The notes: a model not told the origin generated them from the letters alone. A DNA stretch of 64,000 nt from Schmidtea polychroa (GCA_044892525.1 CM097888.1:74586001-74650000); one strand, 5' to 3'; shown: positions 28,305 to 62,569, counted from the first letter of the stretch. A program made the numbers and translations.

Positions 28305-31300
28305 TATGTATTAAAACAAATGTCAATTATGAGAAACTATATATCTAGTATTTATATTTCATTTTTTATTGCAAATAAAAATTTATTTAAATTTCAGTTG
28401 TTTCTTAAAAAAAGGGTATTATTGAATGCGGCAGTTTAACTTTCCATTCACCAAGAATATTATTATTTACTATTAATATTAATTATTAATCATAATTAAA
28501 ATGTTTATTAAAAAATTATTAACGTAATTTATTTTGAAAATTCATTACTTTCTTGGAAACATTTGACACCAACTGTAATTCGTGACAGAAAAATGGCAAG
28601 TACGAGTCTATGAATAATTTCTGTCCTATGCTAAATAATTCTTCTGAAATTGAAAATGAAAATAATTTAGTCTTTAATAATATTTCACCTGGATTCGTTT
28701 CTCTAATCATCGTGACCAATCCGTATTTGACCTGTGCTATTAATTCAATTAGACACATTTTTACACATTTTCGTTCCAGCCGTTGATTATCTGTGACCGA
28801 TTGTGGCCTTATAAATTAAATTATTTTGAAAAATGATAAATTGAAAGAATATTATTAATATTTATTAACAAACAGTTGAAACAAATGTATTGATATTGTT
28901 TAATTTTCATTGAAATTTGAACCAAAGTTGATATTTCTGAAAAAACTTTATTGTCATAAATCTTTACGAATATTTACACCGCACTTCATTATGCTGCTAT
29001 AAATCGCCTCACGATCACCGTACATAGTATGAGGATGGATTAAATGACAGATATGTGTAGCAAATAATGTTGGAGATTCAATATTAGCATCTGACGTAAT
29101 TCCAGCCACCGCACATTAAAAATCTTTTCAGAGACGATTGTTTCATCATCCTTCATAACCATTCCGAAAATAATACCAGAATGACCCACACCTTCCATTG
29201 CAAATTCAACTTGACATAAACTACCATCCGGAGGAAAAAGTAGTTGTTTGGTAATTATATCTTGGATCCATTATATATGTTCCCATAAAATTTAAAAACA
29301 AACAAGAGAAAAGTTTTGAAAATATCTTCATTTTCAAAACTTGCCAAAAAACCTTTTAAAACAAAAACTTGCTTCCAGAAAATTCTACACATAAATTCCA
29401 AAAAAACAATCGATATAAAAATCTAAAATACATTGCCTCGCGCCTGTGTACGCACTCCAACAGGCAGATACAATCAATAATCAACACACACACAGACACA
29501 ATTCATAATTAACCAAATATAAAATACAATTTTTATAATATGGATTTCCCCAATGTGAGATATCATACTAATTTCAACTATCTATAGTTGCAATTATACA
29601 ATTCAAATAAATTACCATGTAAGCCATTTTCACAGTGTTTATTCATAAAAGGATAAATATTGCGAAAATGGCTTAGTAATTTATTTTAATTATAATTTCT
29701 GTAATTGTAATTAAATTTGTTTTAATATGCAGATATTGTGATACAAATAGAATTTGAAAAACGTTGTGATTTCATTATGTCAATAAAACTACAAGCTATC
29801 GTGGCCATATCATGGACAAGATGATACCTATTTTCAATGGAGAAGGTGACGTTCAACAGTGGATTCAGAAAGTGAAGCTAGTGGCAAAAATTCAAAAAAT
29901 CGTGGAGTTGGAATCAGTAATTCCTTTATATCTAGATGGACCAGATTTTGCAGTATATCAGCATTTGAGCGCGGAAGACAAAGGCAACGCATTGAAGATC
30001 GAACATGCCTTAATCGATGTCTATTCGATAGATATGTTCCAAGCATATGACCGATTCCATGAACGAAAGTGGTGCAATGAGCCAGTAGATGTCTATTTGA
30101 ATAATCTCAAAAACTTAGCATCTCTAGCCAAGATAGATAACGAGATCATAATTAAAAGAGCATGGGTTTGCCAGCAGTGTCGTCACAACAGTTACGATCC
30201 AATGCCAATATTCAGCAGATGTCTCTTGTTGAGGTTTTGAAACAGTCTCGTGTCTTAGTAAACTGTGACAGTATGGAAATGTGTTCGGCTGTCGTGGGAA
30301 AACAAGACAAGCAAAAGAAATACTCGTATTGCGGAAAGAATGGTCATCTAGAAGAACGTTGTTTCAAGAAACAAGGAAAGAAGTGTTAGTTAGCAGAAGT
30401 GGGCCACATTGCAAAGGAGTGTACCAGGAATTCAGAGTCGGAAAATGCCAAAGGAGTAGCGCGTGCGCCAGCGTCTACTCTAGCGCGAATATGATGGCGC
30501 TGCAGTTTATTTCAGTCATAATCAATGGGGAATCCGTGAAAGCATTGATCGACTCGGGATGTTCCAAATCCGTTGTGTCAGCCAAAATTGCGTAGAAACA
30601 ATTTATACAGAATGGGAGTATCATGACTGCAGATGGATCACTAGTCAAGTGTATGCGTGATGTCAAAGTTCAGCTGATTGTTGGTGGTAGTTTATTGAAT
30701 GTTAATTGTGTTTCGTTGATGAAACTACCACTTAATGTTGAAATGATTTTAGGAATGGACGTAATAGGGATGCTGGGAGGTCTTAAAATTGACAAGACGG
30801 GTGTATCTTTTCCAGGTATTGCAAACGTATCGTGCGTGGCTGAGAATCAGTTAAATGAGAATTTGCGAATTGAAGATGGTGATTTTTCGGCAGCATTCAG
30901 TGACGGCAAGTGGAACGTGAAGTGGAAACCATCGTACAATTAAACGCATGACAGCAAGAACCAACAAGGGAATATTGGAAATGGTATATTGGTATAACCT
31001 AGCACCCAAATACAAGTGCTGAACGCCGCCGTCTTCATCCGTGGTTTCATATTGCTGGAAAGGAGTTGGCGCTTGTTATACAGAAGAGAAGACACAGGAA
31101 ACATCGTTCCAATTTGGCGATGCAGTTCACGTTAAACCACCAAACGCGAAGTGCACATCGACATGGGGTGAAGGGATTGTAACGAAGGTAAATTCATCGA
31201 CTAACTTCGACATCAACAAAATTCCGCGTCACTATTCCGACATACGACCGGCTGTCAACGAAGCGTCAGTGGAGAACAACGACGATGATAGATTAACAGA

Positions 31301-34300
31301 CGTAGACAATCCTATACTCAACTCACTGCGCCATAGAGGCATGATAAAAAGACCTCGATATCTTGATGATTTTGAAACCATTTTTATCGAGAACGAAGAT
31401 GAAAATCATGCGGAGATATAATTGCATAATTAAATTTATTTTAATATGCAGATATTGTGATAAAAATAGAATTTGAAAAACGTTGTGACTTCATTGTGTC
31501 AATAAAACTACAATTTCACAACTTATTTCGCTATCGACAAGTTTTTTTAAAGATTACAGTTAACTAAATTAACTATTAAATTAGTTATCAGTATTATATT
31601 TTATTTATAAAATATTTGAATGAGATATTATTGGTTTTATTAGATTATTTACATTTGTCATTCGTCAATATTATTACTTTGTTATAGTTGACTTTATGAA
31701 ATATGCTTTACCGTATATACTCGCATATAAGCCGAACCCCCAAATTTGGTTGATTAAAATGTCAAAAATAGATGATAAATAGATGATAATTAACATTTAA
31801 TACATATGAGGAAGTTGATAGATTCTTCTAGATTTAATTAGAAATTTTGTTAAATTTTAAAAAAATATTTTTTATTGAAAAATATTTTAAGAGGAAAATT
31901 GAAATTTGTTTAAATAAAAAAATAACAAAGACAAGTTTTTGAGTGTAAAATTTATTGAATAAAATTTATGGAATTATTTAGTGATTTGCAAATAGATATT
32001 AATGTTGTAACGGATGAGAATCCTAATAATATAAATTAATTATTGAACCATAATTATTTTAATTAAAAGTAGGTTCGCGTATAAGCCGACCCATCAATTT
32101 TGGAAAAAAATTAATTCAAAATTACTCAGCCTATACGCGAGTATATACGGTATTTAAATAAATATTTCTAGTGTGATTCTTTTGTATTTGACATTCATCA
32201 TTTCTACTTGTAATGATTAGGTTGGTCAGGATGGTTGGTCAGGATCAATGACTGATTAAGCTCTCGTTGAGTCCAGGGCCTCTGCATACTGTATCGTTTT
32301 TAATAAAAAAACTGAAATTTAAATAATTAAATAAAATCAAAACAAGCGATTGTGAATCAAAAACAAACAATACAGTGAATTGTTCAGCTATATTGTACAG
32401 TATGCCTTTATAACTCGGACCACTGATGTAACTCAAATACCCTTTCATTGCGCCGCCACTGCCAAGGCATGGTGCCTAACGCCGCTGCAAAATTCACTTC
32501 ACGTCGTTTTGAAACATTATAAACTCACAGAAAAAATACATAGTCAATCGGGTTAAAATGGTAAAAAAATATTTAGTACTTTTTTAAGTTAAAAAAACAA
32601 AATTGGAGAAGATATGCATTATCAAATCTAGACAAATTATAGAAAAATAAAATATTGTATTTCTGATATAGTATTTTCTGAATTTCATTTGGTTTTTTAC
32701 TACTGTTGGGTTATTGAGTTGGTGACAATATTTGTAAATTCAAACTTACTCTGGCTTCAAAGCGTGTTTATTAATTCACAATTCAACACTTTCGAACACA
32801 ATGAGCTTTATTAATATCCACACGGAATAGTACAAATTTCAATTACAACCAATTAACTATAAACCAATTTATCACACAGAGCTTATTTCGACACTACGTG
32901 AAGAATAGCCCTTTCTGTAACCACAACAATAATCACTAGCAGTCAATTACTCAATTACAGAATACGTTGATCGATTGTTCTATTTGCTTTGACCACACAA
33001 TTTATTTACTCCACTTTTACTTTATATTCAATTTTATAAAAGATTCTTGTCACTTCTCTTTTCACTCTGTTTTGATTCTCCTTTTTAACTCTTTCGTCTC
33101 TAATTTTACTCTACATTTTGTCTCTAATTTCGTTTCGTTTTGTTCTCAACTTTGTTCTGTTTTCGTTCTACTTTTTGTTCTAATTTTGTTCTAAATCTGT
33201 TCTAAATTTGTTCTGATTTCTCGTCCACCAGTTTTCCTTTATATAGTTGTTTTGTTTATGGCACTGGCGACAGATTTTGTTTTTCTATTTCCATTTGCTT
33301 CTGCGTTCCCCAATGTCAGCCTTATCTCTGACAGATGTCGAGATATTTTTCCTTTTTCCCATTTTTGTTTGACCGCCTTCTTCCAGCAATTACGTTATCA
33401 CTGGCAGGCTGTCGAGATAATAATATTGTTGTTTCCCTTTTTTCCTGATTTCAAAATTCCTTTTCCTTTTTGTACTAATTAATTAGTACTGACCTTGGCT
33501 TTTATTTTCATGTTTAATTCCTTGTATTTCCTTTATCTTTCTAATTTTTAATTTTTTTACTTCCGTTTTCTTTTCTACGTTCCCATAGATCGTCCCGTTT
33601 GCCATGACGATCTTCCCCTCCCCAGGTAATTTTATTTATTTATTTATAAATTGTTTATTTAGGTATCCTCAACACTACTATAAATAAATTTTTAAAATTT
33701 AATTTTAATTTATAAGTTTTCCTTTCTAGTAATGTATTAATTCTATTTAGGATAAATGGATAAATTGTTTTAATTGTTTTGTACCATTTTTAATCCGACT
33801 TAAATAATCCAAATATTGTTAGTAAACTAAAAGAGTAAGTGGTCTGTGCATCCATAATGGCTATTTTATTTGACTCGCCTTTGGAAACTGTTTTATTGTC
33901 GTTAATAACCAACTTACAAATGTTAAGATATCACATGAAAATGCAGTGAGCAATGTGCAAAAAGAAGGTAAAAGTATGTAAATAATATTATAGTTAGAGA
34001 ATAAAACAAAGATCTACCTTGTGCTGAAAGAATATAAAAGGGAAAATATGATTCCTTGTCGAGAATTCTGATTTGCTGTCGTTCGCAATTTCGTTTCATA
34101 AAGATTGAAATGGTATCCAAATCGAGTTTCCAATCTCGATACGGGATACTGCCCAATGAGAGTCTTTTTATTATTGGTAGCTATTAAAAATACTTTAACC
34201 GCATATCTATATGTTTCCTAAAGAAATAATAGATGAGATATTTTATATTTTGTTTTAAGTAAATTTATTTCGGTACCAAGAAAACTTTATTTAATTTCAA

Positions 34301-39200: not shown

Positions 39201-42200
39201 CAAAAATAAATTTAGTGAATTTTGATTGGTTATTATTTTGTTTGTACAAGATTGCGGTCGTTTGTATATTTTAGTATAGTTTTCTATTCGTGTTTTTTGA
39301 AAAATTTGGTAAGAAGATTTTTTTATGAAGCATTTTAAAATTTTAAACTAATTAAAATTAAATTAATGTCTTTTTATTATTTTGTTTAAATTTCAGCCAT
39401 TTAAATTTATTATTATAATGACATCAGAAAACATCTAAAAACGAAAATACAGACAAGAAAATAGAACTTTTCAAGAAGAATGGACAGAAAAGTTTTTTTT
39501 ATTGACAATAATGGTAAATCGTTGTGTCTTATTTGTAAAGGTACAATTTCCAACTACAAAGTAACCAATTTACGTCGACACTATGAAGTAAGTCATCCAC
39601 ACTTATCAATTCAATATCCACTCAATTCAAACTTGCGGACAGAAAAACTTAAGTCATTGCAATCAGGGCTTCAAGCCCAACAAGGACTATTATCTACTTT
39701 TAGTCGAGAAGATGACAGTGCCAACGAAGCTAGTTTTTTGATAGCTTGGAATATAGCTCGTGCTAAACGTCCATATGGAGAAGGTGAATTTATTAAGAGA
39801 AACTTGGAAGAAGTGATTAAAGTTTTGGATCCGGACAACTCAAAACTACATAAATTGATCTCACGTATTCCTATTTCACGTCGTACAACTGAGCGTCGAA
39901 TTGGCCAAATTAGCGAAAATGTTGAAAATAATTTGATGTGTGATTTAAAAAATTGTACAGCATTCAGTTTAGCTCTCGACGAGTCTACTGACATTCAGGA
40001 TGTTCCACAATTAGCCGTTTTTGTCCGCTTTGTATCTTCTGACGTAAAAGTGAAGGAAGAAATGTTAGACCTAGTAGCTCTTCTCGAAACAACTCGCGGT
40101 ATCGATGTCAAAACTGCGCTTGATGTAGTTATGGACAGGTTCGAATTGACTCGTGACAAACTTGTAAGTGTTGCGACAGACGGAGCGCCTGCAATGATGG
40201 GGAAAAATCAAGGTCTCATTGGTCTTTTAAACAGAGATCCTAATATTCCTCACTTTTTATCTCTTCACTGCATAATTCATCACGAGCATCTCATAGCGAA
40301 GTACTTTAAATACGAAAATGTGTGGAAGATTGTTTTGAAGATTGTGAATTTAATTAGAACAAATGCCAAAACACATCGTCAATTTAAAAACTTTTTGGAA
40401 GAATTAAGATTAAATGAGGAAACAGATGATTTGCCTAATGATGTCTCCTTATGGTGTATTGTTAGATGGCTGTCAACTTACAATGTTTTGAACCGTTTTG
40501 TGGAACTCCTAAATCCTATCATAATATTTACCAAAGAAAACGGAATAGCATACCCAGAATTAGAAAATGAAACTTGGCTTTCTGACTTAATGTTCCTTAC
40601 AGACATTATGGAACATTTGCAAACATTAAATTTGGCTTTACAAGGAAAAGAAAAGATAATTATTGATTTGTCACAAACGTTATTTAGTTTTGAAGCTAAA
40701 CTTCGGCTTTTTGTGAACGATCTTAGGTCGAAAATATTTAATCATTTTCCACGAATAAAAGCTAATATATTGTTGTGAATCTTTGTACTCCACAATGAAG
40801 TTCGTAAAGTCGAAATATCGTTCACAGTTGACCAATCAGCATCTTACAGAATTGCTGCGAACAGCTTTAACAAAGTATACACCAAATTTCAAAGATTTGA
40901 CCAAAAGTCTTCGTTAATTCAAGAAATTTTATTACTTTTTATTAATGGATTTTTATGTTTGTTACTTAATGTTTGAAATAATTATTTTGTTTTTTTTTAA
41001 TAGCGTTTAAGTCTCTTTAATCAAATTAATGAAATAAAAAAAAATATGTACTTTACTATGGTGGCTCTGTAAAAAATAAATTTTCGGAAAATGGCTCTTA
41101 TTGAACCCATGCGTGCCCACCCTTGACCTATAATATCAAAAATATATCAAAGAAACTATAATTAATAATCAAAATTTAATGAAATTTTATTTGATAAAAA
41201 CAATTTATATTTTAAATAATATATTTCAACGAATTTGTTAACTTACTAAAAAATTAATATTTATATTATTAATAATAGTCGTAATATTATTAATAATAAG
41301 AAATATCCCATAAATTTTACCTTTTTAAATTTTTTGTGTCGAAATACATTTTTAAATTTCAATTTCGTTTAAAACAAAAAAGAGTCTAAAAGTAATTAAA
41401 ATAAATTTCAAAATAAGACTTTTTTTGAATTGATTTCTATTGAACATTTAATATAATTTTATTTAATATCGCATAAATTACCGCAAGGTTTTCATATTTT
41501 TATCCAAAATTATGTATTAGAAAATTGCGAAATACATAAAGAAAAGTGGGATTATTGTAGGATTAATGTTGGATGATGAAGTTAAGACCATCACCGCATT
41601 TGTCCTAAATAAATATTACAAGACAGGGCAAAAAGCTACAACGAAGAGCGGCAATAATCCCAAAAAGATCAAATTAAATTCAACAAGATCAAACCAACCC
41701 AACACTTTCTGCGAAAGACATTTTTATTTCAACCTTTGACAATAATTTTGATGTCATATTCTAGACAATAATTATCTTATTTGTGAATGGTGTTTACTCT
41801 CAATAATTATTATCTTAATGTCTTTATTATTTATTTAAATAATATTTTAAATCTATTATTGATATGTCAACCTTATTTTATGTAAATAACATTTTCATTT
41901 TGTGTTCACTTGTATTTTAAGAGTACATATAAATACAATGTCAATTGAAAAGAAATCAGAGGTGAAAAATGAAAAAAAACATAAATAAAAATATAAAAGT
42001 AATGTAAATAATAATTTTAATTGATTATTATAGTGTGAGAACATAAAAGAAAAAATAATAAATGACATAATAATAATAACATCTGTNNNNNNNNNNNNNN
42101 NNNNNNNNNNNNNNNNNNNNNNNNNNNNNNNNNNNNNNNNNNNNNNNNNNNNNNNNNNNNNNNNNNNNNNNNNNNNNNNNNNNNNNNNNNNNNNNNNNNN

Positions 42201-45200: not shown

Positions 45201-48200
45201 ATATGTTTATACAAGACAATATTTAAACTAAAATTTTTATTAATACTATTAATATTATTTTAACGCAAATAAACAAATGATTAACTGAATAAAAAGAATT
45301 AATTATTGTTAAAATTTAGAACATATTGAATAAATAGACATTTTTTGTTCACAAAATATGACTTATTATTGTTAGTTTATAAGGCTGGTAACTATTTTTA
45401 TATTAGATAATTTAAAATACTAATAAAAGAAAATTTAACCAAATAATAACTTACCAAAAATCAGTTGCCCCGCTTGGATAAACAAAAATTCATATGCTAA
45501 AATGACCCGCTTATAAAAGTTATACTGTACTGTAATTTTCCTGATTTTATAGAAGAAATAACATAAAATAATAAGATAGTAACATTGCTAGATTTCAATA
45601 GGATAAAAACTGTAATCTGGCTCAGTGCTTTCAACAAATAACAAATGTATTTTCATGACAAATGCACAAGTTCTGAAAATGTTGACTAGTAATTTAAACA
45701 GAACTTCAATTGATAGAATTTCTGATTACTTTTACTAAGGGGAAACTTTCCTTTATAACAGATGATATTTTAACACAATTCATATGAAAAAATAAGAAGA
45801 TGAGAAAAATTAATACATTTTCTGCAGCAAATCTCTTATCATTTACTCGTTTAACATTTAATTTATGTTATTACCAAGAATCCATCATTTTAAATATGTT
45901 AGTATTTGTAATAATATCAGTATTTATGTTCTTAAAAACCTTAACTAATAATGAACAAAACAACTCAAAACTTGCCAATACATAAGACAGTAAAATGAAA
46001 ATGATGATTGCGAAGGTAAATAAAAGGAAAGGTATAATATAAAGTCAACTATATCACAAGTACAACTGCTACAGGTATAAATTTTATATTTCTTAATAGC
46101 ATCATATCTAATGTTTTATTGTCAAATATTGGGTATATTTTCCCATGCTTTCGACCCTTAATCAAATTACTAAAATGCAGCTCCAACAAAAATTAAATAA
46201 AAACTTTATCTCGAAATGTTCGTAATCAAATTACAGAGTGCTATAAATTTGGAAAAATAAAAATGAATATTTATTTTCTAAATTTTGTTTCATAATGATT
46301 TTGTTTATTGTCATTTATTTATTTTTAAATGATAATATAAATTTCAAAATACAAAATCATTAAACAATAAAACAATTATACAAAACCAGTAAACACGAAA
46401 TGTAAGAAAAATATTACAAAATTACACACATACTTTTTATTTCTTAAAAAATTGCAACACCAAATGACATAAAAAGATTAGTTTTATTGTATAAATAAAG
46501 TGAGGAATACTAATTTTAGCAATTGGTACCAACCAAAATATAAATGGGAATAATTACTGTCAAAATATGAACACGCCAAAACGTTCACTTTTCGCGGTTT
46601 TTTAAATTTTAAATTTCAAAACCGTGTATAAAAAGTACCGCGGAAATTGAGGGGTAGGTGTGTATTTTTAAAATAATTGCAACAAAATTTGACATACAGG
46701 CAACCAACGTTCCCTCTAAGCTGCGCGCGTGCGTGCGCTCGCAGCACCTCCAACTCCCCAGCGCAGTATACACCAAACCCCACTGAGATACGTTCTCTAT
46801 AGTGGTGGTCTGCGTGTAGAGTGATTGCTCACTCACCAATTTACTAATGAATTTTATACTGAATTATGTACTGATGTTGATTAAATTGTTGTTGAGCAAA
46901 GTTGTCATAATTTGTTTTACATCATGAAATTTATTTTAGCCATTTTAGAAATGGTTTTCAGGTAAGATATTAAATTTAAAGTAAATTTTAAGACTTGAAT
47001 TTTGATCCATATGGATATGAGATCATTATTCAAGTTCTTAAACATTACTTTTAATCAACAATATAATTATAAATTATTTTTAATTAATTTTCAGGCTTTT
47101 TTTTAGGAATTTTATGTCATTTATGTCATTTATTATGGAATTATTTCGAAAAAACGTGAGTCCGATATGTTTTTAATTATAATTAATTAAATAAATAAAT
47201 AAATCCCCAAAAATTTGTATTTTTTTAAAACATTTTGGGAAAAATCGCCTAGTATGAATAAAGTAATTTTTTAAATTTTTGTAATTTTCTTTTCTGAGTT
47301 CAATATCAAGGGCTTCTTTCAGGAAATCATATCTTGATTGAAACGACATTGATCCAAATCCTTCTGCTCTTGATATTCTTTTCCTAATATTAAATTTAAT
47401 CTTACTAAATATGCTTTCAATTGGATTGACGAATGGGCTGTATGGCGGTAAATGCTCAATAATATTATTTGGCGATAATGCTCCTCCATGAATTGAGGCA
47501 TTATCATGAATGAATCGATATTCCGTTTCATTCAATTTCGATGTTATCTCCCAAATAAAAGTTTGATAGGTATCCTTTTTATAGGATCCTATAATTAATT
47601 TGTGGTGAATTGGCCCTTTGACGCCTATTGCCAGAGCCAAGGACATATTTCGTCCTCTGTTTGCTGGTTCGATTTTGTACAACCTTTCACCTTTTTTGTT
47701 CCTTCCCCGTTTCTGGCTTGTCCAGCTATTAAATCCACATTCATCGATATATATCAATTTTTTATCTCTCCATCCTTCTTCCAGGAATCGAGTTACAAAC
47801 TGTAATCTCATTTCCATTACTCGATCTGAATTACGTTGTTATCAGATGTTTCTTCAAGAAACGAGAAATCGTCATTTTTGATACGTGGCAGTTTATGGAA
47901 ATGAGGTAAATTCTCATTTCTTCAATTGAAGCGTATATGTTTCCTTCGACAAAGTCCAACAATTTGTATCCTTCTTCTTCTGATATTTTTTCTTTGCTGC
48001 CACCTATCTTGCCCTTTGACCAATGGCCAAATTTTTTATATTTGTAAACAATTGATTTTATTGAGCTTTTCGATATCCCCAATAATTTCCCGAAGTGTAA
48101 ATAATCTTCGCCATTTTCCATGGCATTTATTATTCGGACTTTGTCAATTTCCGAAATACTAAGAAAATATTATATAATTTAAAATTATAAATAAAATTTA

Positions 48201-51200
48201 CAATTTATGTTCTTTTTTTGCGGTTACAGGCATCGAAGACGTTCCAGCAACATCTTCAACCCTATCAAATAATAAATTTATTAAAACTCATAAAGAAATT
48301 TTACAACATCATTCCTTCACCTTCACGAAACAGGAGAGTTTCTATAGAAATATCAGAAATTCTAAGGAATGTTTAACTTCATTTTAACTGAAAAAATAAA
48401 TTTTACGATGATATTTCGTCATTTTCATTACATTTTAACGTATTTTCATTAAAAATAAATTTTAAAAAATTTTCTGCCATCTTTTTTTCTCAAAATTGTC
48501 TAAAAATAACTTATTATAGAAACGTATCTCAGCGTTACAATAAAATGAATCAAAAGTTTGTATGTGTTTTTTATTATGTGTTATGCTTGTGTGCATTTTT
48601 TAATTTTCCTTCCACTTTTCAGATTTCTATAATATAAGATGTATCTCATTGAGCTACATCAGCGTGAAATCAAAGTAAGTATGTATGTTTCTATAATGTA
48701 AGATTATTGATTTTTTTGTTATATTATAGGAAATGCTTCTCAGTGGTGTTTGGTGTATTTAATTCAACCGTTTCATGGCAGTTGTTCCTAGTAAAAAGCA
48801 CACGGAAATTGTCGATGTAAATGGAGCACCAGCAGCGAAGACCGGTTATCTACTTAGTTTTCAACATAGTCGCTACAGTTATAGAATACAGTGTCGTTTT
48901 AAAACTCTTACAACCACGTTATAGCATTTTGACGCTCATTTGTATTTAAAGACTGCTCAGTGCATCTGACTTTGCGCGCACTGCTGCTTATGGCTTAGAG
49001 GGAACATTGCACGCAACCATTGTATAAGGAGATTAATTGGTTTCTTGCTATTCAAAATCATGCTATAAGAAATTTGGAATTTTAGAAAAATATAATTTTT
49101 TCACACGTAATATCTCAAATTATTTAACTATTGTGAGCAACAAACAATTTTAAAATCGTAATTCAAGTACTGTGTTATACGAGGATTATTTGTTTTAATC
49201 AACGTGTTAACAGATTATTTTGTATCCCATTAATAATATATTAGCCGTCATTAATTTGTCAGTTTGTTTATATGTGTGTCAGATCAAATCGAAATTGGTC
49301 CTATTTTATATAGTTTATAAGGAAATTTTTGATATGTAAAATTTAACTTTGAGTTACTTGAAAAATTTTAAAAATAAAATTTGCAAAAAATTTGCTTTAT
49401 TTTTATTATCATTTTAACTTTTCACGTCATGCTTGACCGGGGATTATATTAGTAAATTAATATTGTTTGAAAATATTTAATCGTGTGAAAAATGGGCAGA
49501 CATTTATTCAGAAAATAAAATTTCCTAAGCCTGTTGGTAGGACGAGGCTGAAAATCCAAAAAAATATTTTATAGAAAATAAAGAAATTCAGAATACATTT
49601 AAACAATGACATAAAGCGAAAAAAATATCTTTGGAAATTTCATTTTGCATAACATCTGACTTATTAGAAGAAATATCATTTAATTAAAACATTTTAAGAA
49701 TTATACAAAGCGTATTTTACTATCCAAATATTGCTAAGAAGATATTGCAACGAAAAATGAATAAAAAATTCCATGTTGAAATGAATTGTAGTGACTTTCT
49801 GTTAATAAATATATTAATTTAGTAGTTAATTTGCAAATTCACCTGCCGGAAATAGCGGACAAAGGCGTCATTGTAAAAATCGTTGATCCTGTTGTCCTAT
49901 ACTGAGTTTCGTTAGTGAGTGTTGGTAAACTCCTGAACCTCTTCCCATTTAATCACAATGTCCTCAATGACAGCATTTGAGATTAGTTGATTAGATTGCT
50001 CCTTCTCGTTGTCAGGTGAAGCTTCCCTTAGAGTTTCATTATGCTGCTGGACTAAAGGTGCTTGGCATTGAATACTTGTTGCGAGCAGTATCTTTCATCC
50101 TTTAGATATTTACTGCCACTATTTTCAAGAGACTTTTTTAAATCATCATAAATGACTTTGGCCTTATGACAGATGATATAATCATTATATTATAATGGGT
50201 AAAGATATCACTTTTCAATTGCCTGTCTTTAATCAAAATTACCAACAACCTTTCCATTTCCTTCTGTATTAAAGGCCTATGCTTTTCATGGAAAAGCTTT
50301 GACACTCAGTTGGCCACCATGGCCGACTTGATGTCATCCTTGGCCAAAATGGTGCAAATGGTGGTCTTGTTCAGACCAAAGTCCTTGACCTGATCTCACT
50401 GTGTCACCCCACATTCATTCCTAATTATTTCTTGTTATATTTCAACAGAAATCAATCACCTTCCTGCATTTGTTAAAAGCCATAATATAGCTACACCAAA
50501 TATATTTATTAAAACAAACATGTGACTGAGATAATCACAGAAAAGAACGACTGTTGCGCGTTGATGCATGCCATTTTCGAAATTTGTTTCATACAGTAAA
50601 AATTAAGTAATTCTTTTATCTTTTGTAATTTCAAATGGAATAGTTTAAATAAAAAATGAAGTTTATTTTTGTTCTGAACAAAAAACACAAGAATTTCTCT
50701 AATTTCTTAAATTCTAGCCCAAAAAATGTAAAGGCATCAATAGTGGGCGTAGGAACGCATTTCAACTGTATTGTGAGGAATTGATATATTGTGAAATTTA
50801 ACCAACAGTAAATAATTTATTATTAATATTTATCGAATCTGACATAGTTAGAAACTAAAAATTAATTTTTAGCAATAATAGATTTCCTGTTAATTATTTT
50901 GATGAAAAGAGAAAATATTTTACCCGAGATCGGTGTCAATTTTCGATCGACCATGAAAACCAAAATCTGTACTGTCTCCAGTTATAGTAGCAAAAATTAC
51001 ATAAAGTTTGTTGGAGAAAATAATAATTGGAGAAGGAAGCATAAGACGAATGATTTTCCTGAAATAATAAATTTTGAAATAATATTTTTTTAAATTATAA
51101 ATAATTTTTGAATAAATAATTACACATACATGGCAACGATTTAATTATAAGAAAACACCACTCAAACATTTGTTATACGATATATTTCGACACATTTCCT

Positions 51201-54200
51201 GTCATCATCAGGTAGGCTATAATAACTATAAAAATTATAGATTTTTAAAAAGATTTATTGATTATATTAATTATATCAATTTTTTAATAAAAATATTTTA
51301 TTCTTTAAAAATTATAAAAATTATAATTCAAATAATAAATCATTTTTTTAAATTTTAGCAATCAAATATAAAATTTTAAAATATTGAAATTTAATAATTT
51401 AATAATTATTTAATTTAACAACAACAATATACAAAAAACTATTTAAAAACATTTAAAAAACAAGTATTCACTGCATTTTGCACGTTGATTTTCGAACCCA
51501 ATGACTTTACCAATAACACTTCACAAATTACACGTTCCCAAGAATTATTATTGAAATTTTTAAATAAAATTTTAAAATCAGACATATTTATTTATCTCTT
51601 ACAGCCTTTATTGTGTTCACTAATTACATCACCCATTAATCACCCATTACATGTAAATTGATAATCATGATAGAACACTATCCAACAGGAGTTTTCGACT
51701 TATTAATAAACATATTACGTACTTTACACAAATTCGACTCAATCTTAAAATTTAAATTTCCTAACGGCTTGCTTATCTTTCTTTTATAATCTTTAAAACC
51801 TTCTTTAAAATACCAACACAAATTTAGGCTCATATAAATAATTTAATAATTGTAATTTTAAAAAACCTTTTAAAAAATATTTTTAAAATACATTTTTAAT
51901 TTAAAAACATTTATATTTAAAAAAAATTAATAAGTTATTATTATATAAATTTACATCATTGAACCTTTTAGTTTTTTCAGCATTAATCAATTTTCATTTT
52001 TTTAATTTCTTTTGTCTTTCTTTTCGTCAAATTATATAGACTGCAAGAAATAAAGATGAATGAAGTCGAAAAAATAAATCAATATAATTTTCAATGTAAT
52101 TATGATGTTATATTTGAAAAATGTATATAAATTTAAACATTACTTATTTTCCATATTTTGAACTTCAACTTTATCAGTTTCGGTCAAAAGTAAAAGCGAG
52201 GAAAATTGACTATCATAACTGAAAAGGTTTGTGTTCAATAAGTCATCAGTATCAGAATCATGTCCAGTTTCTTCGTAAATTTTTATACTCATTGTATTTT
52301 CACCAGGACCTGTATATAGTCCAATACCGTGGATGTAAATAGTTTCAGAAACTGAAAACTTTATTGAATCGTGAGCATTTGGAGAATATAACCAGTTGCT
52401 ATTTTCTTCTAAATGGATAAAATAAAGAAATTTTTATTTCATATAATAAGTAATTTGAATCAAAAAAAATATATTAATTTATTAAAAACCAGTATGCGGT
52501 AGAGTCAAAAAGAGAAATAAATATCACGCAATTTTGAAAAATATATTTTTTTCAATTTCATCTATTTAACCGATTTAAAGACGCCTATCTTAAAATGAAA
52601 AATATGATGGATTTCTTTCATCCGACAAGACTGTCTATATTATTGAGAGATTCTGTACTTTTTCGTCGTCAAATTTATGGGGGCCAGTCATGATGCGAAG
52701 CGTAAATCACCTGAATAAGTATTTACATTCACACATTCGAACATTATACTACCAAATTCATCAATAGTGATACTAAATCTCGTTTGATTTACTTTGTTTA
52801 AATAAAGCGGTTTTTATTTCCTTTTTCAAAGTATTTTCAACCGTTGTTTCAATTTTGGGAATGTGGTCTATTTCCACTTTACAAATCCACAAATAGCTTC
52901 AGACAACGTAGATGATTGCAATACTTTACTTACTCACAGAACATCAGGAAAGTCTAGTATTAACAAAATAAAACTTTAAAAGTACTAGTTATTTAAAAAC
53001 TCGTGTTTTAGGATTCTAAAATGCAAGAAATTGATTAATAATAATTATAATAAATAATTAGATTTCAGAGGTATGGGAGATGTCATTTTAGAGTCACCTA
53101 TACATTAAATAGAAAAGTATCCTTAATTTCTATTTGTCTTCCTATTGTCTTGGTATTTCGGATACAACAAAATGGTATTTTTATTAAATATTTACTNNNN
53201 NNNNNNNNNNNNNNNNNNNNNNNNNNNNNNNNNNNNNNNNNNNNNNNNNNNNNNNNNNNNNNNNNNNNNNNNNNNNNNNNNNNNNNNNNNNNNNNNNNNN
53301 NNNNNNNNNNNNNNNNNNNNNNNNNNNNNNNNNNNNNNNNNNNNNNNNNNNNNNNNNNNNNNNNTGTGAATCTTTTGATAGTAAATATTTCTTTATTTGA
53401 TTCTACAGTTTTAATTTCAATATTGTTCTGAGGATCTGTATATTTTTTCAGCAAAAGTTTTTCAGCACTGACTATAAAAATCATATAAGGTCAAACATCA
53501 AAAGGTTAGAATTACCCAAAACGTTTAAAGCGATTCTGTACCGCTGACTGGAGAAATTTATATCATCTGGTAAATCAATCAGTTGATCAAATTTATCATG
53601 AAAATTATCATTTTGGAAAATGTTGCTTTTTGAGTATTTAACTGTGAATTTCTTTGATCCATGTCCACTGTCAATACTCCACAATACCGAATACCTTGGA
53701 TCAAAATATGAGTTCATTAATGAACTAAAATTTCCTTCTTCATAGTCTGGCATTATTTTAATAGCTCCGGAAGATATATTAATTAGCAATCCTCTTTGTT
53801 CATCCGACGTCAATAAAATGTTGTTGTCTTTTGCTAGAAATTTAAACTGATCTTGATGGCAGGATTTTCGCTTTGTTGACAACGTTAACGGTTTCCTTTT
53901 CATATAGAAAATGTTTTGCTTGAGAATACAAAATATGATTTGTTTTTTATAAATATTTGTGCTTAAATTGAAAAAGATCGGCTGAAGGTTATCAGTTAAG
54001 TCATTTGGATTTGAGATTAAGTCCACAATTTGCGGGCTTATTATTTTATTGCCGAATATGAACACCTTTCCATTTTGACTTAAAATTCCAGTACTAAAAG
54101 AACCCGTAGTAATTCTAACAGATTTACATTGAATTGGGACGACCTTTGGCAGTTCTCTGATAAATTGTTAATTATTAATAAGTAATAAATAATAAAATAT

Positions 54201-57200
54201 TTGATTTGCTTTAAATAGAATGTTAAATAAATTTGCAAAAACTATAAAATTTAAAAATAATATTGTTATTAACCTTTTAAACGTCGCAAATTATTTCTAC
54301 GGCTGTGTACTGCAGACTAAGAAATTTAAAATTTTAGAAACTAATTTTTTAATAAATAAATTTCATTTTTAAACACTGTTTATTAAATTTAATAATTTTT
54401 ACATTCTTAGATGTAATTTTACATTCACATCATTTTGCACATTTGTTTTCCATGTATCACTTCAAATACATCAATACAAACACATTATTTTATGCATACA
54501 CAGTACAGCCTAATTCCTCATTGCAGTACCGGCCTTAGATAATTTAGTGCTACATAAAAAGTGCTATATATTTTTTGTCTTATATAAAAAGTGATATTAG
54601 TAGGACGAAGAATAACAAATAATTTTAAATTTTAATTTTTCATAATTTTGCCGCCCATTAAAATAGGCAGCCGCCTATGTCGCTTATACAAAAGCCGGCA
54701 CTGCCTCATTGTGTTCGCTAATATTAATCAATCTCTTAAGTTGACCGTGATCAAGAACGTTATACGGATATGGCGAGTAGTAATTTCTAAGTAAGGTATT
54801 GCAGCCAAAATTTGTATATTGATAACCAAGATCCAAGTACGATTAAAAGAGGATTTAAAATTCATTATTTAATTCACTTTGGGATTATTTCGTCACAATA
54901 TTTTAAGAAATTAAAATTTTATAATATTTTGGTTTTTGAAACACGTCATGAATAATAAATATATATTCAATATATAATTAAGATATTTTTATAAAAATAG
55001 TTTTTGAAAGAGCCTGCACTGAAAGTTTGTGTTAAATAAATAAATCTATAGTCTAGAAGTAAATGATGATAAAAAAACTGAAAATAAAAAGAAATCCATA
55101 GAGAAAGGAATAAAGAATTGTACTTATTATATAACTAAATAATGAAAAATAATATTTCTAAAATTGTGAAATCGTTTTCTTACTTGATTGATAAATATCC
55201 GCGACCCAACTGATTGAATTTATTATTACCAAATGAATAAACGTCGCCATTTACTGTCAAAATAACAGTGTGATAATGTCCACATGATATTTGCTGAATT
55301 CGTAGGAAATTAGAACGGTTTCTAATTCCGGAAGAGGCATTTGTATCAGAATATATGAGTAACTTTTGAGGCTTTATTGTCGGAACTTGATGTTTTGATC
55401 TAAAATTGAAAATAATATTTATATACATCACATAATAATGATTGTTAAAGTTTCTTCATTGGACAGTGATTTACAGATAAAATAATCTCTTCATTTACGC
55501 AATAAAATTAGTTTTTTTCTTTTGTGGGTCGAAACGTTTTAACTAAAACAATTGCTTTTAATATACATATTTATAAGAAGTTACTGATAAAAAAATGTAA
55601 ACTTTTTGATACAACTATCATTTATTTTCATAATAAAAAAGTAATTAATGCATATAATGTTATTGTTACTTATCCAGACTTACTTTCGATAAAATAATTT
55701 TTTGTCGTTATGCCACTATATTTAAATTATATTATTTTAAGTAACATTGTAATTATAAATTATTATGATGTTCACAAAATTATTATAGAAACGACCTTAA
55801 CCTACACAGATTGCATTGATAATTTTATGATCATTGGTCTTGATTTTTATTTAANNNNNNNNNNNNNNNNNNNNNNNNNNNNNNNNNNNNNNNNNNNNNN
55901 NNNNNNNNNNNNNNNNNNNNNNNNNNNNNNNNNNNNNNNNNNNNNNNNNNNNNNNNNNNNNNNNNNNNNNNNNNNNNNNNNNNNNNNNNNNNNNNNNNNN
56001 NNNNNNNNNNNNNNNNNNNNNNNNNNNNNNNNNNNNNNNNNNNNNNNNNNNNNNNNNNNNNNNNNNNNNNNNNNNNNNNNNNNNNNNNNNNNAGCCTTTT
56101 GCTGCAAATAATGTATTTAATGAAAAAATTTTCGACTATAAGATATTGTTATTATTATTAATATTATTTTTTTTATTATTATTGATTGATTAAGTGATTA
56201 ATTAATTCATTGATTGACATGATTTCCAGACATCTGCTGGTTTGACGTATGTACTTTTTATGGTAAAAATATCTCAAAGGAAAAATATATACAAATTATT
56301 CAGCATCATTTCACGAGCTAGATGATAAAATTTAAGTAAAAATGCCCGGAATTCTTGTCAGTTAGCTATAAAATCAGTATTTGTATTTTTCCTTGACAAA
56401 TTTACAAATATAAGAAACTATGAAATAATGAAACAACATTTATGGTTTGTTACCTTGTTTGAGAACAACTGTCGATATTGTTATTATCAATTTCTTGCAT
56501 AATTTCGTTATATTTCCCATCATTATCCCCACTGACACATCCACATTGATAATAGTTATTAACACCGAATGTTATTAAATATCCATTTCTTGATAAGCAG
56601 GCTCCATGGGATTTTCCGAGAGATATCTAAAATATTAAATTAAATAAGTTCAATTCTCTCAAGCATGACGTAAAAGAATTCCCAGTGTTGATTTTAAACT
56701 CTTGCTTTATCATCATTATTAATAAACACTATACAGCTTTTTAAATATTTTTTTTTAATATTTCTTTTAAAAATACAAGCCTTCAAAGCATCCTTGTTAA
56801 CAAAAAAGGTAACCCCTTGAACAATGTTATTATAGTTCTTGAAATTTAACTATGATGTTTACTATCGTCTGTATATTAATTAATACTAATGTGTAAAGGA
56901 AAGGTTTGTTAGAACCTAACAGAGTCTCCTGTAAAAATCTGTGTCGGGACTGTTAGGGTGTGTGTATGTAATGCTTATTACAATACCAATAAGAATAAAA
57001 TCAAAATATAAATATCAAAACGACTAACGAACTATAAACATAAAATTGTAATTTTATTAATGAACATAAGGTACTTTAAATATACCAAGGAGATTGACTT
57101 CGAATGCCAATTAGTATAATTCTAATTTTCTTTTATATGGCAATCTCTTTGTACGGTTATCTTTCCAATTTTCTGTTCGGATAATAATTTACTCTGGTAC

Positions 57201-60200
57201 AGTCTCACTTCTTTCAATCTAATTTTCCTTTGTAAGACAATCTCTTTGAACGGTTATATTTTCAATTTTCTCTTCAGATAACAATTTGCTCTGGTACAAT
57301 CTAGCTTTGTTCGATTCTAATTTTCTTTTGTAAGTTATAGGATCTCAAATCTTGTGTTGATTAAATTTTCGATTTTATTTTTATTCAATTTACTATAGCT
57401 ATATAGTTTTTTTTAAATTTCCTTTCCCCAACGCTACGGGGACGATAATAAATAAAAAACACAGAACCTAATTAGGATATTGTTGACAACAATTATTTAC
57501 AATTATTTTCAATTATTTGCAACAATCTATTACAGCCAACTTTAAACATTTTTTAAAATTAAAATACAAATTGTTTTAAACGCTTGATCAAAATATTATT
57601 CCACAAAATTTAATCTAAAATATTATAAACAGATTTTTTGTTACTTTTTAAATAAAATAATTATCTAATATTAATAAAGAAAAGATTGAAATGATATATC
57701 AAAAACTTTTGTTAATTTTTGTTTTATTGATCATTTGTTGATGGATAAAAGAAAAGAAAGTGAAAATATTGTAAATATAAATAACCAAATACTAAAAATA
57801 ACAAAAAAATTACATAGACTAATCAGAACTGATAATATTTGAATTATATTATTTTGTGAGATTTTGAGAATCTTGATATGAGGTAATGAAGATTATCAAA
57901 ATATGCAAAAGAACTGCAAAATTATCTTTTACTTATTTCGAATTAAAGTTCAGGCCTTAAACTTCTATTTTTTGATTAAGTTGTTTTGAAAGCTTTTATT
58001 GTTTTTCCAGGTATATATATTTTTTAATTATAATTTAATATTAATTTTAATATAGTTTAATGTGATGATTACTTGGTAGCAGCATTAATTAAAATTTAAA
58101 ACAGTTAAATGATAATTTAAGCTTTTTTCTGAAAATAATATATTTAGTACAAATGAAAAGATTTCACCATTATCACTTTTTAAATATTCTTTAGAAGTTC
58201 CTTTTTAAATGTTTTTAAAGTTTTAAAAAAAAATTGATTTTTAAATTAAAAGTATTTATTTAATTTTTAAAATTGTTTAAATTGCGGTTTTGATTAATTA
58301 CAAATTAAATTTTAATTAAATACAAAAATGATAATGAAAAAAAAATAAAATTGAAAATGAAAATAAAAAGGTTCAAATATTGTGATAAAATAAAATAAAT
58401 ACCTGCTTAAAAGATAAAAATAGGATTAGAGAAAAATAAACTAATAAAATTGGAATTGTGCCAAGAATTATTTAATGACCTTATTAAAATGGATATAATT
58501 TTAAAGTTTGAAACGTAGACTCTGGAGGTAAGGGTATTGTTGAGAATTTAATAGTTTTCTTAATTTGGTAATCTAAGAGGATCATGATCATGAATCCAAA
58601 GATTTTGCAGCTATTATGAAGCTAACTTTGATTTCTTTATTAAACTTGAAGTATAACCGTGTGCTATAACTTAGACAAAAGAAATACATTAAAATAGTAT
58701 AAAAATATAAAAAGTCAATTTCTTTTTAATTAAATCATATAAAAGTTAATATCAAATGAAAAGAATTTTTTGACTCATTTATAATTTTAACTATGAAGTT
58801 TTATTTTTTAATTTAATTTATTTATACTTCATAACAGAAGAAACTGAAATCTTTACTTGTGTGACATGATACGGACTCAATAAAGCTCCATAGCAAGTAG
58901 ACAGAGAATGAATAGAATCTTTCTCTAAAAATAGCACTTGCCCTTCTTTCGATACCAGAGCAAGATTATCTTTGGAATAACTGCCAGATGCCCATGTTTT
59001 TGAAACAAATCTTGAATCTAAAGATATATTTAGTTTATTTTTATTCAAATTTTAAAATAATTAATTTGGACGTGTGGTTATAAAATGAATTAATTTCAAG
59101 TAAAAATCCTATTCAATATCGGAATTAAAATTTTGGTTGCTTTTAATTCCCTATTAATAAGTATATTTTTTGTGCAAAGAAGATTTTTCGGGAAAATTTT
59201 ATCGAAATTGACAAGTTTGAAAATAAATAAAAAAAATTAATAAAAAATAAAAATAGGCAAATTTGTAGATATGTTAAAAAATTTTTATCATCATTGTACA
59301 TTATAGAAAAATATTTTTTATGATTTAATTTTCGGCATTGTTTATTTATCTTTTATTAGAAAAAGCTTTTGCAAAAATTCCTATTAAAAAATATAAATAT
59401 TAATTTATAATCTGTAATGAACATTCAAGGAAATTGATAATGGATGACTGATTAAACTGATATTATTTATTGAGTATATGTTTATTTTTGTTTTAATTGT
59501 GATTTTTATTTTTTATTCATATTTTTTGTAATATCAGCATTGTCGAATAGAATATTTTTCTATATATACTTTTGAATTATAAAAGCTAGTTGTGAGTCTT
59601 CACAATGATGGCCATACATTTTCCCCAAAATTTCAAAACTTGACATTTCAAAAGTATTATTTACATAAGTTGTTTCGTAGATAATTTATATATTTAAAAA
59701 ATGAAAACTCTTACGTTGCTAAACATTGAAAAATTGACACTTAAAAGTGCATCAACATGTTGAAAAATTATGTTTTCCAAATTGAAGCGATGTTGTCAAA
59801 AAAAAAGATTTTATATGAACAATACGATTATATAAAAAATTTTGCACATTTTTATTTGTTTATTTAATTTATAATTAATAATTTACTTCAACTATAATTT
59901 TAAAAACTGATAAAAAATTTAAAAATATCTGATATAAAATGTACATAAGATCTAATACTAATTTAGTTGATTATACGATTCAAATATGCAGATGCAATCA
60001 TAAGAAAACGCCACTTGAACATTTGTTTTACGATATATTTCGACGGTATTCCTGTCAGTTATTGATGTCAGTTATATATTTTATGAACAAAAATTTCCTA
60101 ACATCTCCTTTACCTCTGACCAGATTTTCAAATTTTAATTCGAAAAAACCCCAACAAACCAAAAAGTCACAAAACTTACTTGGCATAAGTCTATCCAAGC

Positions 60201-60707: not shown

Positions 60708-61256
60708 AATGACAAATAAATATACCAGTTTAAGTTAATAGTGTTAGTATATTTTCTATATAACCACAATAAAAGTCACGTAAATGTAACGTACAAATTG
60801 ACTGATTATAAGAATAAATAGATATAGATAGATATTTAAACTTTTGTTTAATTTGATATATGTCATTAGGACTAGTATTATTAATTATATTGCCAAACAG
60901 TAATGTAAGAAATAGACAAATTTAAAGTTAGATGACAGTATCTGCGTATATGAAATTAAAACTTCTATAATACAGGCTAGTGTGCAAACCAGTGAATGAG
61001 CCATAATTTGTGCAAATATTTTCTTTCAAATTATTAAATTACAAAATTTAGTTTTTTTGGAATTTTACAATTTAAAGTAATATAAGAACTTTTTTTTAAA
61101 TTTCATCACTCATTTCTTTTCCATTGACATTGTATTTATTAAATATCAGTAAATATATCAAAAACATCGATATATTTATTGATTCAAGCATTATAATAAA
61201 TACAATTTAAAGTAATATAAACATTACAAGCTTTGTGTTACCCAGTGCAAATCCCA

Positions 61257-61298
61257 ATAGTAGACTAGTTTCGAGCTTTTGGCTCTCATCAGTATTAT
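61257..61298 (-). ncRNA. Minimal type I hammerhead ribozyme motif (family A), inverted copy with a stem I mismatch
   Basis: The reverse complement reads ATAATA-CTGATGA-GAGC-CAAAA-GCTC-GAAA-CTAGTC-TACTAT; there is one G>A change in stem I. Confidence 0.85.
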
Positions 61299-61334
61299 GC
61301 AGGAGACAGTAAGATTTCTTTTCGCGTTTCCAGC

Positions 61335-61376
61335 ATAGTACTGATGAGAGCCAAAAGCTCGAAACTAGTCTACTAT
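61335..61376 (+). ncRNA. Minimal type I hammerhead ribozyme motif (family A)
   Basis: The 42-nt motif is identical to 16519-16560. Confidence 0.88.
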
Positions 61377-62569
61377 TGGGATTTGCACTGGGTAACACAA
61401 AGCTTGTAATGTTTATATTATTCAAATGTTAGATATCCGTAAAAATATTTTTACATAATTTAAGTTTTTATAATCTTAATCTTAACTTTTTGGTTTTGAT
61501 ATTAATTGCAACATATTTTCATTTTATTTATGCATTTTGAGAAAAAATAGTGAATATTTATTAAATAATTTTTTTATATTTTAATATTGACTTTAATAAG
61601 TTCGTCTTCAAATTTGCAAATTATAGAGATAAATGAACATTTTGGTATTACTAATAACCGTTTAAATTGGAATTCATCATTCTTTATTATTTTATAATTA
61701 AATTTTATCGAAAAATCATTTCTTTTAAAATTGGATATGGCAAGATCTTCGGCATTTAATTCTAAAATTGTATTTGCCTTTTTTATCAAATAATAATATT
61801 TTAAAAAATTTATTCCATTCAACATTTCTACGTGTATTTTTTAATGATTTGTGTTTTTATGTTTTATTTTTCTAGGTATTATTATTTTTATATGAAGAAT
61901 TATGAAAAACCTTTAGGTTCAGCAAAAGCGAAAGAGTTTTATCTTTTTATTCAGTTCGAAGATCAGATATGTTTCATTTCAAAGACAATACCATAATATG
62001 GTTCTCTTGCTGACTTATCTGTGTGGTTAAAAAAATAACTAAGTTTAAAGGTTTCAATTTATGGGAATTGATTGTATTGCGTCCATTTTGGAAATGTTTC
62101 AAAAATTAATATCTATAGTTTTCATTTAATATAAAACGCTTATCACTTTCATTTTTAAATAAAATTAATTACTTCTCCTGATTGATTACGAACAACACAA
62201 AATTCTTCTAAATTGAGAACTTCACAAGCCAAAGATAGGCTGGGGCATGTTTCGATTACTAAAATTTAATAAATTAATTAAAATATCTTAAGAAATTTAA
62301 AAATTTCATTTTTATTTTATCTCAGTTTTTGTTTTCACTTGAAATGTTGAATTTGATGTTTTTTATATAGAATAACAGAATAAATTTATTAATCAAAACT
62401 GCAGTCATCAAATAAGATTTTTCTTATTTTTTTCACTTCTGAATACATATCCCATTTCCTATATATTAATTGAACATACTGAACTTTTTATCAATAATAT
62501 TTGGTTTGTCGGTCAATTGAATTATTAACAACTTACGATTAGAAATTCTATTCTGTTCAGATTGTACTC

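Follow-up and report, generated by a model that had tools for sequence, protein, structure and literature searches.

A palindromic pair of hammerhead ribozyme motifs in the genome of Schmidtea polychroa, probably the relic of a head-to-head retroelement insertion

Results

Three copies of one hammerhead core lie in the window

The window, a stretch of 64,000 nucleotides from Schmidtea polychroa (GCA_044892525.1 CM097888.1:74586001-74650000), contains a 30-nt hammerhead core in three identical copies. Two of these lie close together on opposite strands at 61 kb (61341–61370, plus; 61263–61292, minus), where they form a palindrome, and the third lies alone at 16.5 kb (16525–16554, plus). No match to this core is expected in dinucleotide shuffles of the window (0.00 matches), and a looser hammerhead pattern was matched four times against 0.10 matches expected from shuffles. 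The window also carries a UBC ORF and a hAT ORF, neither of which gave an exact match in protein look-ups. Relatives of the hAT transposase are spread over beetles, aphids, Hydra and scorpions, at identities of at most 78%. A 194-aa ORF on the minus strand (53481–54065) matched no Pfam family and has one relative, on a 991-bp Logan contig. Nine runs of N (134–341 nt) are scattered through the window, none of them within 5 kb of the palindrome; clean splice sites were not found at the flanks of these runs, which do not follow exon borders. The original prediction had placed the palindrome within a putative intron of MYCBP2. The features of the two hammerhead loci are listed in Table 1.

Table 1. 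Hammerhead copies in the window, their parts and the neighbouring insertion.
Feature	Position	Strand	Remarks
Left 14-nt direct repeat, candidate target-site duplication of the solo copy	16472–16485		Exact; longest word common to the flanks; 0/2000 shuffles
Solo copy, 148-bp insertion	16486–16633	+	Hammerhead 16519–16560; predicted cleavage after 16554; 61-kb arms homologous up to 16601
Right 14-nt direct repeat	16634–16647		Exact match of 16472–16485
Left 20-mer copy	61066–61085		Probable target-site duplication, produced by a neighbouring insertion
Segment bracketed by the 20-mer, 115 bp	61086–61200	-	A8 run at minus-strand end; about 54 nt match 41929–41978 at 86%
Right 20-mer copy	61201–61220		Final 8 nt shared with the left arm, at its outer end
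Longer 5'-truncated copy, left arm and most of the spacer	61213–61324	-	3' end leftward; 109 nt against 16493–16601, 92.7%
Mirror-image hammerhead, minus copy	61252–61305	-	Predicted cleavage after C 61263; HH9 21.1 bits
Non-complementary palindrome centre	61308–61325		Minus-copy 5' end, together with the junction to the plus copy
Shorter 5'-truncated copy, right arm	61321–61420	+	3' end rightward; 97 nt against 16505–16601, 93.8%
Type I hammerhead, plus copy	61328–61381	+	Helix I 61335–61340 / 61371–61376; CUGAUGA from 61341; predicted cleavage after C 61370; HH9 22.3 bits, E = 0.0034

The palindrome consists of two truncated copies with their 3' ends outward

Mirror comparison of the arms placed the axis of the palindrome between positions 61316 and 61317. 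The arms of the inverted repeat (61213–61307 and 61326–61420) are 95 nt each, lie 18 nt apart and are complementary at 92 of 95 positions (97%). Complementarity is perfect across the outer 82 nt, and all three mismatches are confined to the inner 13 nt. The original prediction had given the arms as 87/88 complementary around a 32-nt spacer, which is correct for the narrower bounds 61213–61300 and 61333–61420, and had described two complete hammerhead cores on opposite strands facing outwards; all core residues were indeed found in both. It had further taken the spacer to be the upstream part of the minus-strand copy and the plus-strand copy to be truncated at its 5' end. Alignment to the 16.5-kb copy bears out both points: the alignment covers 109 nt of the minus copy and 97 nt of the plus copy, so that the minus copy reaches about 12 nt further 5', through the spacer; both are truncated at the 5' end, the plus copy more severely. 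The two overlap by about 4 nt at the junction. At their outer ends, both arms terminate at the same element nucleotide and reach at most 3 nt past the homology to the solo copy, beyond which the flanks on either side are unrelated, unique sequence with sharp boundaries. Judged from the sequence, a pair of truncated copies placed head to head describes the palindrome better than a single element does.

The solo copy was inserted as a single unit with a 3' extension

The copy at 16.5 kb shows what a single unit looks like. Because exact 14-nt direct repeats flank it, we read the sequence between them as a 148-bp insertion. Directly before the right-hand repeat lies a 3' extension, or tail, of 32 nt (16602–16633) that is absent from both arms at 61 kb. 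No likeness to this tail was found in either 61-kb flank, where 1999/2000 and 1009/2000 shuffles scored as well. The predicted cleavage site is 47–50 nt from the 3' ends of the arms; in the solo copy, with its tail, the distance to the end is 79 nt.

A block of 93 nt can be compared across the three copies, which represent two independent events. Within this block, both arms share three differences from the 16.5-kb copy, and two further differences are private to each arm. These four all fall within the 14 nt adjoining the centre of the palindrome, an outcome with a probability of about 5 in 10,000 if differences were spread uniformly. The 5' ends of the three copies lie within 20 nt of each other in element coordinates.

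A target-site duplication was also sought around the palindrome, and none that is convincing was found. The flanks have a single exact word of at least 8 nt in common, which looks like a chance match, and the best candidate is an imperfect repeat of about 15 nt whose score was reached by 55/2000 shuffles. The lack of a convincing flanking duplication counts against reading the palindrome as the relic of an insertion.

A neighbouring 20-nt repeat probably belongs to another insertion

The original prediction had pointed out that a 20-mer at the left edge of the palindrome (61201–61220) recurs exactly at 61066–61085. The repeat is real, and none of 2000 shuffles gave a 20-nt direct repeat at this place, but it is probably not part of the hammerhead element. 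Our slightly favoured reading is that the 115 bp between its two copies are a separate retroposed fragment that lost its 5' part, landed at the left edge of the palindrome and produced a target-site duplication of 20 bp. If so, this fragment arrived after the palindrome, because the duplicated target contains 8 nt of the arm. A third match to the 115-bp repeat, at 22242–22282, adjoins a run of N.

The motif is a type I hammerhead whose helix III is predicted to need a partner

All three copies have the invariant positions of the hammerhead (C3 U4 G5 A6 N7 G8 A9, G12 A13 A14, the A15.1-U16.1 pair and C17 as the H position of the predicted GUC cleavage site), in the core strings CUGAUGA and GAAA. 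Helix I has 6 bp, followed by a 2-nt bulge and a 5-bp outer extension, and helix II has 4 bp, including the G10.1-C11.1 pair, with a 5-nt loop. One substitution in the minus-strand copy of the palindrome breaks one helix I pair.

Helix III is formed by the 6-nt palindrome ACUAGU. Within a single molecule it would have to close as a 2-bp stem with a 2-nt loop, which is sterically forbidden; the monomer ribozyme fold with a 1-bp (A-U) helix III is worth about -1 kcal/mol. The competing fold of the monomer, in which core bases pair with helix III bases, reaches -13.4 kcal/mol. In contrast to the monomer ribozyme, a double hammerhead between two sense copies, joined by a 6-bp intermolecular helix III, is predicted at -18.8 kcal/mol. 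Because ACUAGU cannot close helix III in a single molecule, the motif is, by these models, a dimer-dependent type I hammerhead. The energies thus support the earlier proposal of a short palindromic stem III that needs a dimer. The same proposal had called the ribozymes minimal, and this term applies only in part, because helices I (6 bp) and II (4 bp) do not have the dimensions of the minimal hammerhead ribozymes (min-HHRs) of Penelope-like elements (PLEs).

An Rfam covariance search, named as a check in the original prediction, returned matches to HH9 over all three copies, with scores of 21.1–24.7 bits in permissive mode against a gathering score of 52; no hammerhead family was matched at its gathering score. 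As a control, we searched 20 metagenome hammerhead loci with the same helix III, two of which flank reverse transcriptase (RT) ORFs, and all 20 likewise failed the Rfam thresholds. Because control hammerheads, including those flanking RT ORFs, fail as well, the negative result is weak counter-evidence. Permissive matches to MIR161, mir-208, snR82 and Flavi_CRE lie far below threshold and were set aside as generic hairpin matches.

The window holds no coding partner for the hammerhead copies

The original prediction had suggested looking for RT or GIY-YIG ORFs, or tandem arrays, next to the hammerhead unit, and neither turned up within the window. There is no ORF of at least 90 aa near any copy at either locus, the 10 longest ORFs of the window contain no RVT or GIY-YIG Pfam domain, and no tandem array in the window contains the hammerhead motif. 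When the proteins of two metagenomic RT ORFs flanked by hammerheads (loci L019 and L041, described below) were compared with the window by tblastn, nothing below E = 2 was found. As RT and GIY-YIG ORFs, tblastn matches and tandem arrays are all absent, the three copies are ORF-less fragments. The absence of RT and GIY-YIG ORFs near the copies also counts against a putative connection between these copies and an autonomous PLE of the same genome.

Searches with the exact 30-nt core found nothing in viral contigs, in metagenome contigs or, as a text string, in the papers searched. A 74-aa spurious ORF that spans the 16.5-kb copy found no match in a protein search of eukaryote assemblies. In comparison with these papers and with the viral and metagenome contigs, this family of hammerhead sequences is therefore apparently undescribed.

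Similar hammerheads and similar geometry occur in metagenome contigs

Scanning metagenome contigs for the core together with the same helix III yielded 93 loci, nearly all of which have complementary flanks for helices I and II. In L019 and L041, two direct hammerhead copies flank RVT_1 ORFs. Two further loci resemble the palindrome. In L053, a complete hammerhead copy stands opposite an inverted copy truncated within the motif, with arms of 57 nt, a spacer of 62 nt and the 3' ends outward. L004 is a eukaryotic contig that also carries SAMD1-like and eIF3g genes; its two hammerhead copies point outwards and are separated by about 500 nt, and one of them lacks part of the core. Because these two loci show the same arrangement, the outward inverted geometry is recurrent and not special to the window.

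RNA from the palindrome is predicted to fold as a hairpin

A 232-nt RNA across the palindrome has a predicted folding energy of -169.9 kcal/mol, compared with -45 ± 3.9 kcal/mol for shuffles (z = -31.9). The best fold of this RNA that retains the ribozyme helices reaches -93.2 kcal/mol, against -169.9 kcal/mol for the hairpin. As had been proposed, any transcript across the locus, in either direction, would contain one ribozyme together with its own antisense; both strands carry this arrangement. The antisense arm would be transcribed first and would zip with the sense ribozyme into a hairpin of about 100 bp, so that the transcript, if there is one, would be a long double-stranded RNA hairpin. 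Because a second sense copy is absent in cis and the antisense sequesters the ribozyme, self-cleavage from the 61-kb locus would not be expected; this expectation takes nearest-neighbour energies alone into account and leaves aside tertiary contacts, protein chaperones and co-transcriptional kinetics.

Discussion

We consider the 61-kb palindrome to be, probably, a dead insertion relic, in which the 3' end of a hammerhead retroelement is present twice, head to head, in copies of about 110 and 100 nt that have been severely truncated at their 5' ends. With no coding capacity and only stubs of about 100 nt remaining, the element would no longer work. The class of element to which the copies belong, and the way in which two of them came to face each other, can be approached through what has been published on PLEs and retrozymes.

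PLEs carry hammerheads within their terminal repeats, and most of the motifs found in genomes are solo remnants (PMC4209133). Their insertions are heavily 5'-truncated, with a tail of 30–40 bp that is optional at one end (PMC8557442). An inverted, 5'-truncated copy placed against the 5' end of another is likewise a published feature of such insertions (PMC4209133, PMC8557442, PMC11167929). In biochemical work with a purified PLE protein, both target strands were cut and extended, with the same internal RT start sites being used, and the tail corresponds to the stretch between two such start sites (PMC11167929). The loci described here resemble PLE insertions in several respects. In all three copies the hammerhead sits close to the 3' terminus of what was inserted, the target is AT-rich, and the palindrome is a head-to-head pair of 5'-truncated copies with their 3' ends outward and arms ending at the same nucleotide. 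The optional tail may also have a counterpart, in that one copy has a 32-nt extension and two do not, a comparison that extends over three copies only. Opposite-strand hammerhead pairs are themselves already published: dual min-HHRs lie about 100–700 bp apart on opposite strands in Schistosoma (PMC4209133). The spacer of the present pair is shorter (18–32 nt) than in those cases. Unlike PLEs, the loci have no RT or GIY-YIG ORF, and both copies in the palindrome are only about 100–110 nt long. The ribozyme differs as well: the min-HHR of PLEs has a helix II of 7–8 bp, a helix I of 4–5 bp and an unpaired base after A9, and this form with a long helix II is the usual one in metazoan PLE repeats, whereas the present motif combines a 6-bp helix I with a 4-bp helix II.

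Animal hammerheads of the canonical type I are found mostly in non-LTR retrozymes (PMC7229834). As in these elements, the hammerhead of the copies studied here is of the canonical type I and has a helix III that is short and palindromic, the copies are GC-poor and lack an ORF (PMC7229834), and the target-site duplication of the solo copy is longer than 4 bp. In contrast to metazoan non-LTR retrozymes, the copies are solo or inverted, and the window contains no head-to-tail tandem array. A 2026 preprint derives retrozymes from the pLTRs of PLEs and describes families of 51–972 bp that occur as dispersed monomers, about 44% of them intronic (bioRxiv 10.64898/2026.07.22.740005). The hammerheads of newt and schistosome satellites and of SINE-like elements share with the present motif a helix III too short for one molecule, so that a double hammerhead is needed (PMC4209133), and most metazoan type I hammerheads are dimer-dependent according to Cervera and De la Pena (PMC4209133). 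In the newt and schistosome cases, tandem arrays supply a second sense copy in cis; the 61-kb locus, unlike them, supplies an antisense copy.

These comparisons point to an element of the PLE kind. It could be the truncated terminal repeat of a PLE, but a short non-autonomous element of the retrozyme type that uses PLE machinery is more likely. We prefer the latter because of the dimensions of the ribozyme and the clustering of the 5' ends. The link to PLEs and retrozymes made in the original prediction agrees with the published work (PMC4209133, PMC8557442, PMC7229834) and with the metagenome loci. Its further suggestion of a tiny ORF-less retroelement is plausible at the level of sequence, because the three 5' ends lie within 20 nt of each other. 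In a stronger form of this suggestion, the family would be a very small PLE-dependent hammerhead retroelement of about 115–150 nt that is present here near its full length, and its head-to-head insertions would be sources of hairpin RNA that feed small-RNA silencing; we regard this form as doubtful.

In our view, the palindrome most likely arose in a single insertion event in which PLE endonuclease and reverse transcriptase cut both strands of the target. Both strands would have been primed from the same internal start site, giving two short cDNAs, which could then have been joined through a few bases of microhomology. A single event with two-strand priming would account for both the identical outer ends and the asymmetric centre.

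The main competitor to this scheme holds that one truncated copy was inserted first and that the second arm was added without two-strand priming, either later or at second-strand synthesis, by snap-back of the cDNA or by a template switch during replication. Such folding back would explain why the arms are identical over their outer 82 nt and have their three differences from the 16.5-kb copy in common, and the short (18–32 nt), asymmetric spacer is like the loop of a hairpin. Preferential remodelling of palindrome centres would also explain why all arm-to-arm differences lie next to the centre. Simple copying, on the other hand, does not predict private changes near the centre in both arms, the terminal bases at the junction are poorly complementary for snap-back priming, and flanking DNA has not clearly been duplicated along with the copy, given that the arms run no more than 3 nt past the solo-copy homology. 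Two-strand priming from one site, moreover, has been demonstrated biochemically for a PLE (PMC11167929). Taken together, we judge a fold-back origin unlikely. A foldback or MITE-type DNA transposon that contains hammerhead sequences by chance in its terminal inverted repeats would also give long inverted repeats around a short centre. The arm that stands alone at 16.5 kb has a 14-bp target-site duplication and a 3' extension to itself, which argues that the single arm is the inserting unit, and no convincing duplication flanks the palindrome; such a transposon is the least probable origin of all those considered, to the point of being negligible.

Two other explanations concern what the palindrome is, and not how it was inserted. 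Hairpin-RNA (endo-siRNA) loci are long, near-perfect inverted copies of transposable elements with a short loop that fold into double-stranded RNA. The palindrome resembles them in its predicted hairpin, with long, almost perfectly matching arms around a short loop, and it could be a functional locus of this kind, whose double-stranded RNA, made from the host gene or as its own transcript, is diced into small RNAs that silence the hammerhead family or regulate the host gene. In its favor, either strand is predicted to form a near-perfect stem, about 100 bp long and worth -170 kcal/mol, and the permissive Rfam mode matched only generic hairpin models (miRNA precursors), well under their thresholds. 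Those sub-threshold miRNA matches reflect hairpin shape only, however, and formation as a by-product of insertion accounts fully for the structure, which makes a functional hairpin locus improbable. It is less probable still that the inverted repeat is an artefact of assembly, such as a chimeric fold-back read. Tandem and inverted PLE structures are troublesome in shotgun assemblies, according to Craig et al. (PMC8557442), but the palindrome has sharp bounds with unrelated unique flanks on either side, its centre is asymmetric, and the private differences of each arm can nevertheless be aligned with an independent copy 45 kb distant. In addition, the nearest run of N is more than 5 kb off, and the same geometry is found in unrelated contigs.

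As a probable relic of head-to-head insertion, the palindrome represents a known by-product of insertion within a known class of ribozyme-bearing retroelements, and it introduces no new principle. Together with the solo copy, it would provide a small, clean case of three published features of PLEs, namely two-strand priming at one site, an optional tail and severe 5' truncation. It also suggests that a ribozyme motif with a perfect core may be masked by its genomic arrangement, which calls for caution in genome-wide counts of ribozymes.

Hammerhead-related sequences and neighbouring repeats

The solo hammerhead copy at 16.5 kb is bounded on both sides by short exact repeats (Table). Its final 32 nt have no counterpart in either arm of the 61-kb palindrome, which is built of two head-to-head, 5'-truncated copies, and this extra sequence resembles the optional tail of Penelope-like elements (PLEs). 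Next to the palindrome, a segment of 115 bp is bracketed by an exact 20-mer direct repeat, and ∼54 nt of it match positions 41929-41978. This segment was probably retroposed separately, as a fragment whose 20-bp target-site duplication shares 8 nt with the palindrome arm.

A fourth hammerhead-like motif was found on the minus strand, with a helix I of only ∼3 bp. Rfam searches, including those in permissive mode, returned no match for it; the motif may be a decayed minimal hammerhead of the PLE type, or it may have arisen by chance.

Features of the window
Feature	Positions	Strand	Details
Solo hammerhead insertion, 148 bp	16486-16633		Exact 14-nt direct repeats on both sides (whole 16472-16647)
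203-aa ORF, no interruptions	22735-23346	+	Full ubiquitin-conjugating enzyme domain, E = 5e-36
GC-richer block	29812-31421	+	Weak match to retroviral-type aspartyl protease
hAT-type ORF	39480-40778	+	DUF4371 and Spin-doc zinc finger
Tc1/mariner DDE_3 fragment	47173-47817	-	
Fourth hammerhead-like motif	51176-51211	-	CUGAUGA, unpaired U, 4-bp helix II, GAAA, AUAUAU helix III
Tandem repeat, 97 bp, 2.2 copies	57121-57334		83% matches
115-bp segment between the two 20-mers	within 61066-61220		A8 run on minus strand

Other mobile-element remnants in the table are the hAT-type ORF, whose relatives occur in beetles, aphids, Hydra and scorpions, the Tc1/mariner fragment and the GC-richer block. The ubiquitin-conjugating enzyme ORF, which may represent either a retrocopy or a gene without introns, is flanked on each side by a run of masked N. 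Nine such runs, of 134-341 nt each, are spread over positions 3810-56092, and their edges do not fall on splice-site dinucleotides.

Short-helix-III hammerheads in metagenome contigs

Among the metagenome contigs scanned for a hammerhead core with the same palindromic helix III, six short ones (L027, L033, L052, L054, L066 and L072) carry hammerheads with the ACUAGU helix III head to tail, at a period of ∼490-730 bp. This pattern is either a retrozyme-like tandem organisation or the product of circular or tandem assemblies. In six others (L016, L019, L041, L085, L009 and L050), the hammerhead lies inside contig ends that are 100% identical; such ends are expected where the assembly of an RT-encoding element is circular or a collapsed tandem.

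None of 20 metagenome short-helix-III loci, including those that flank RT genes, reached the gathering score of any hammerhead model in Rfam release 15. Short-helix-III hammerheads are, as a class, a blind spot of Rfam-based annotation.
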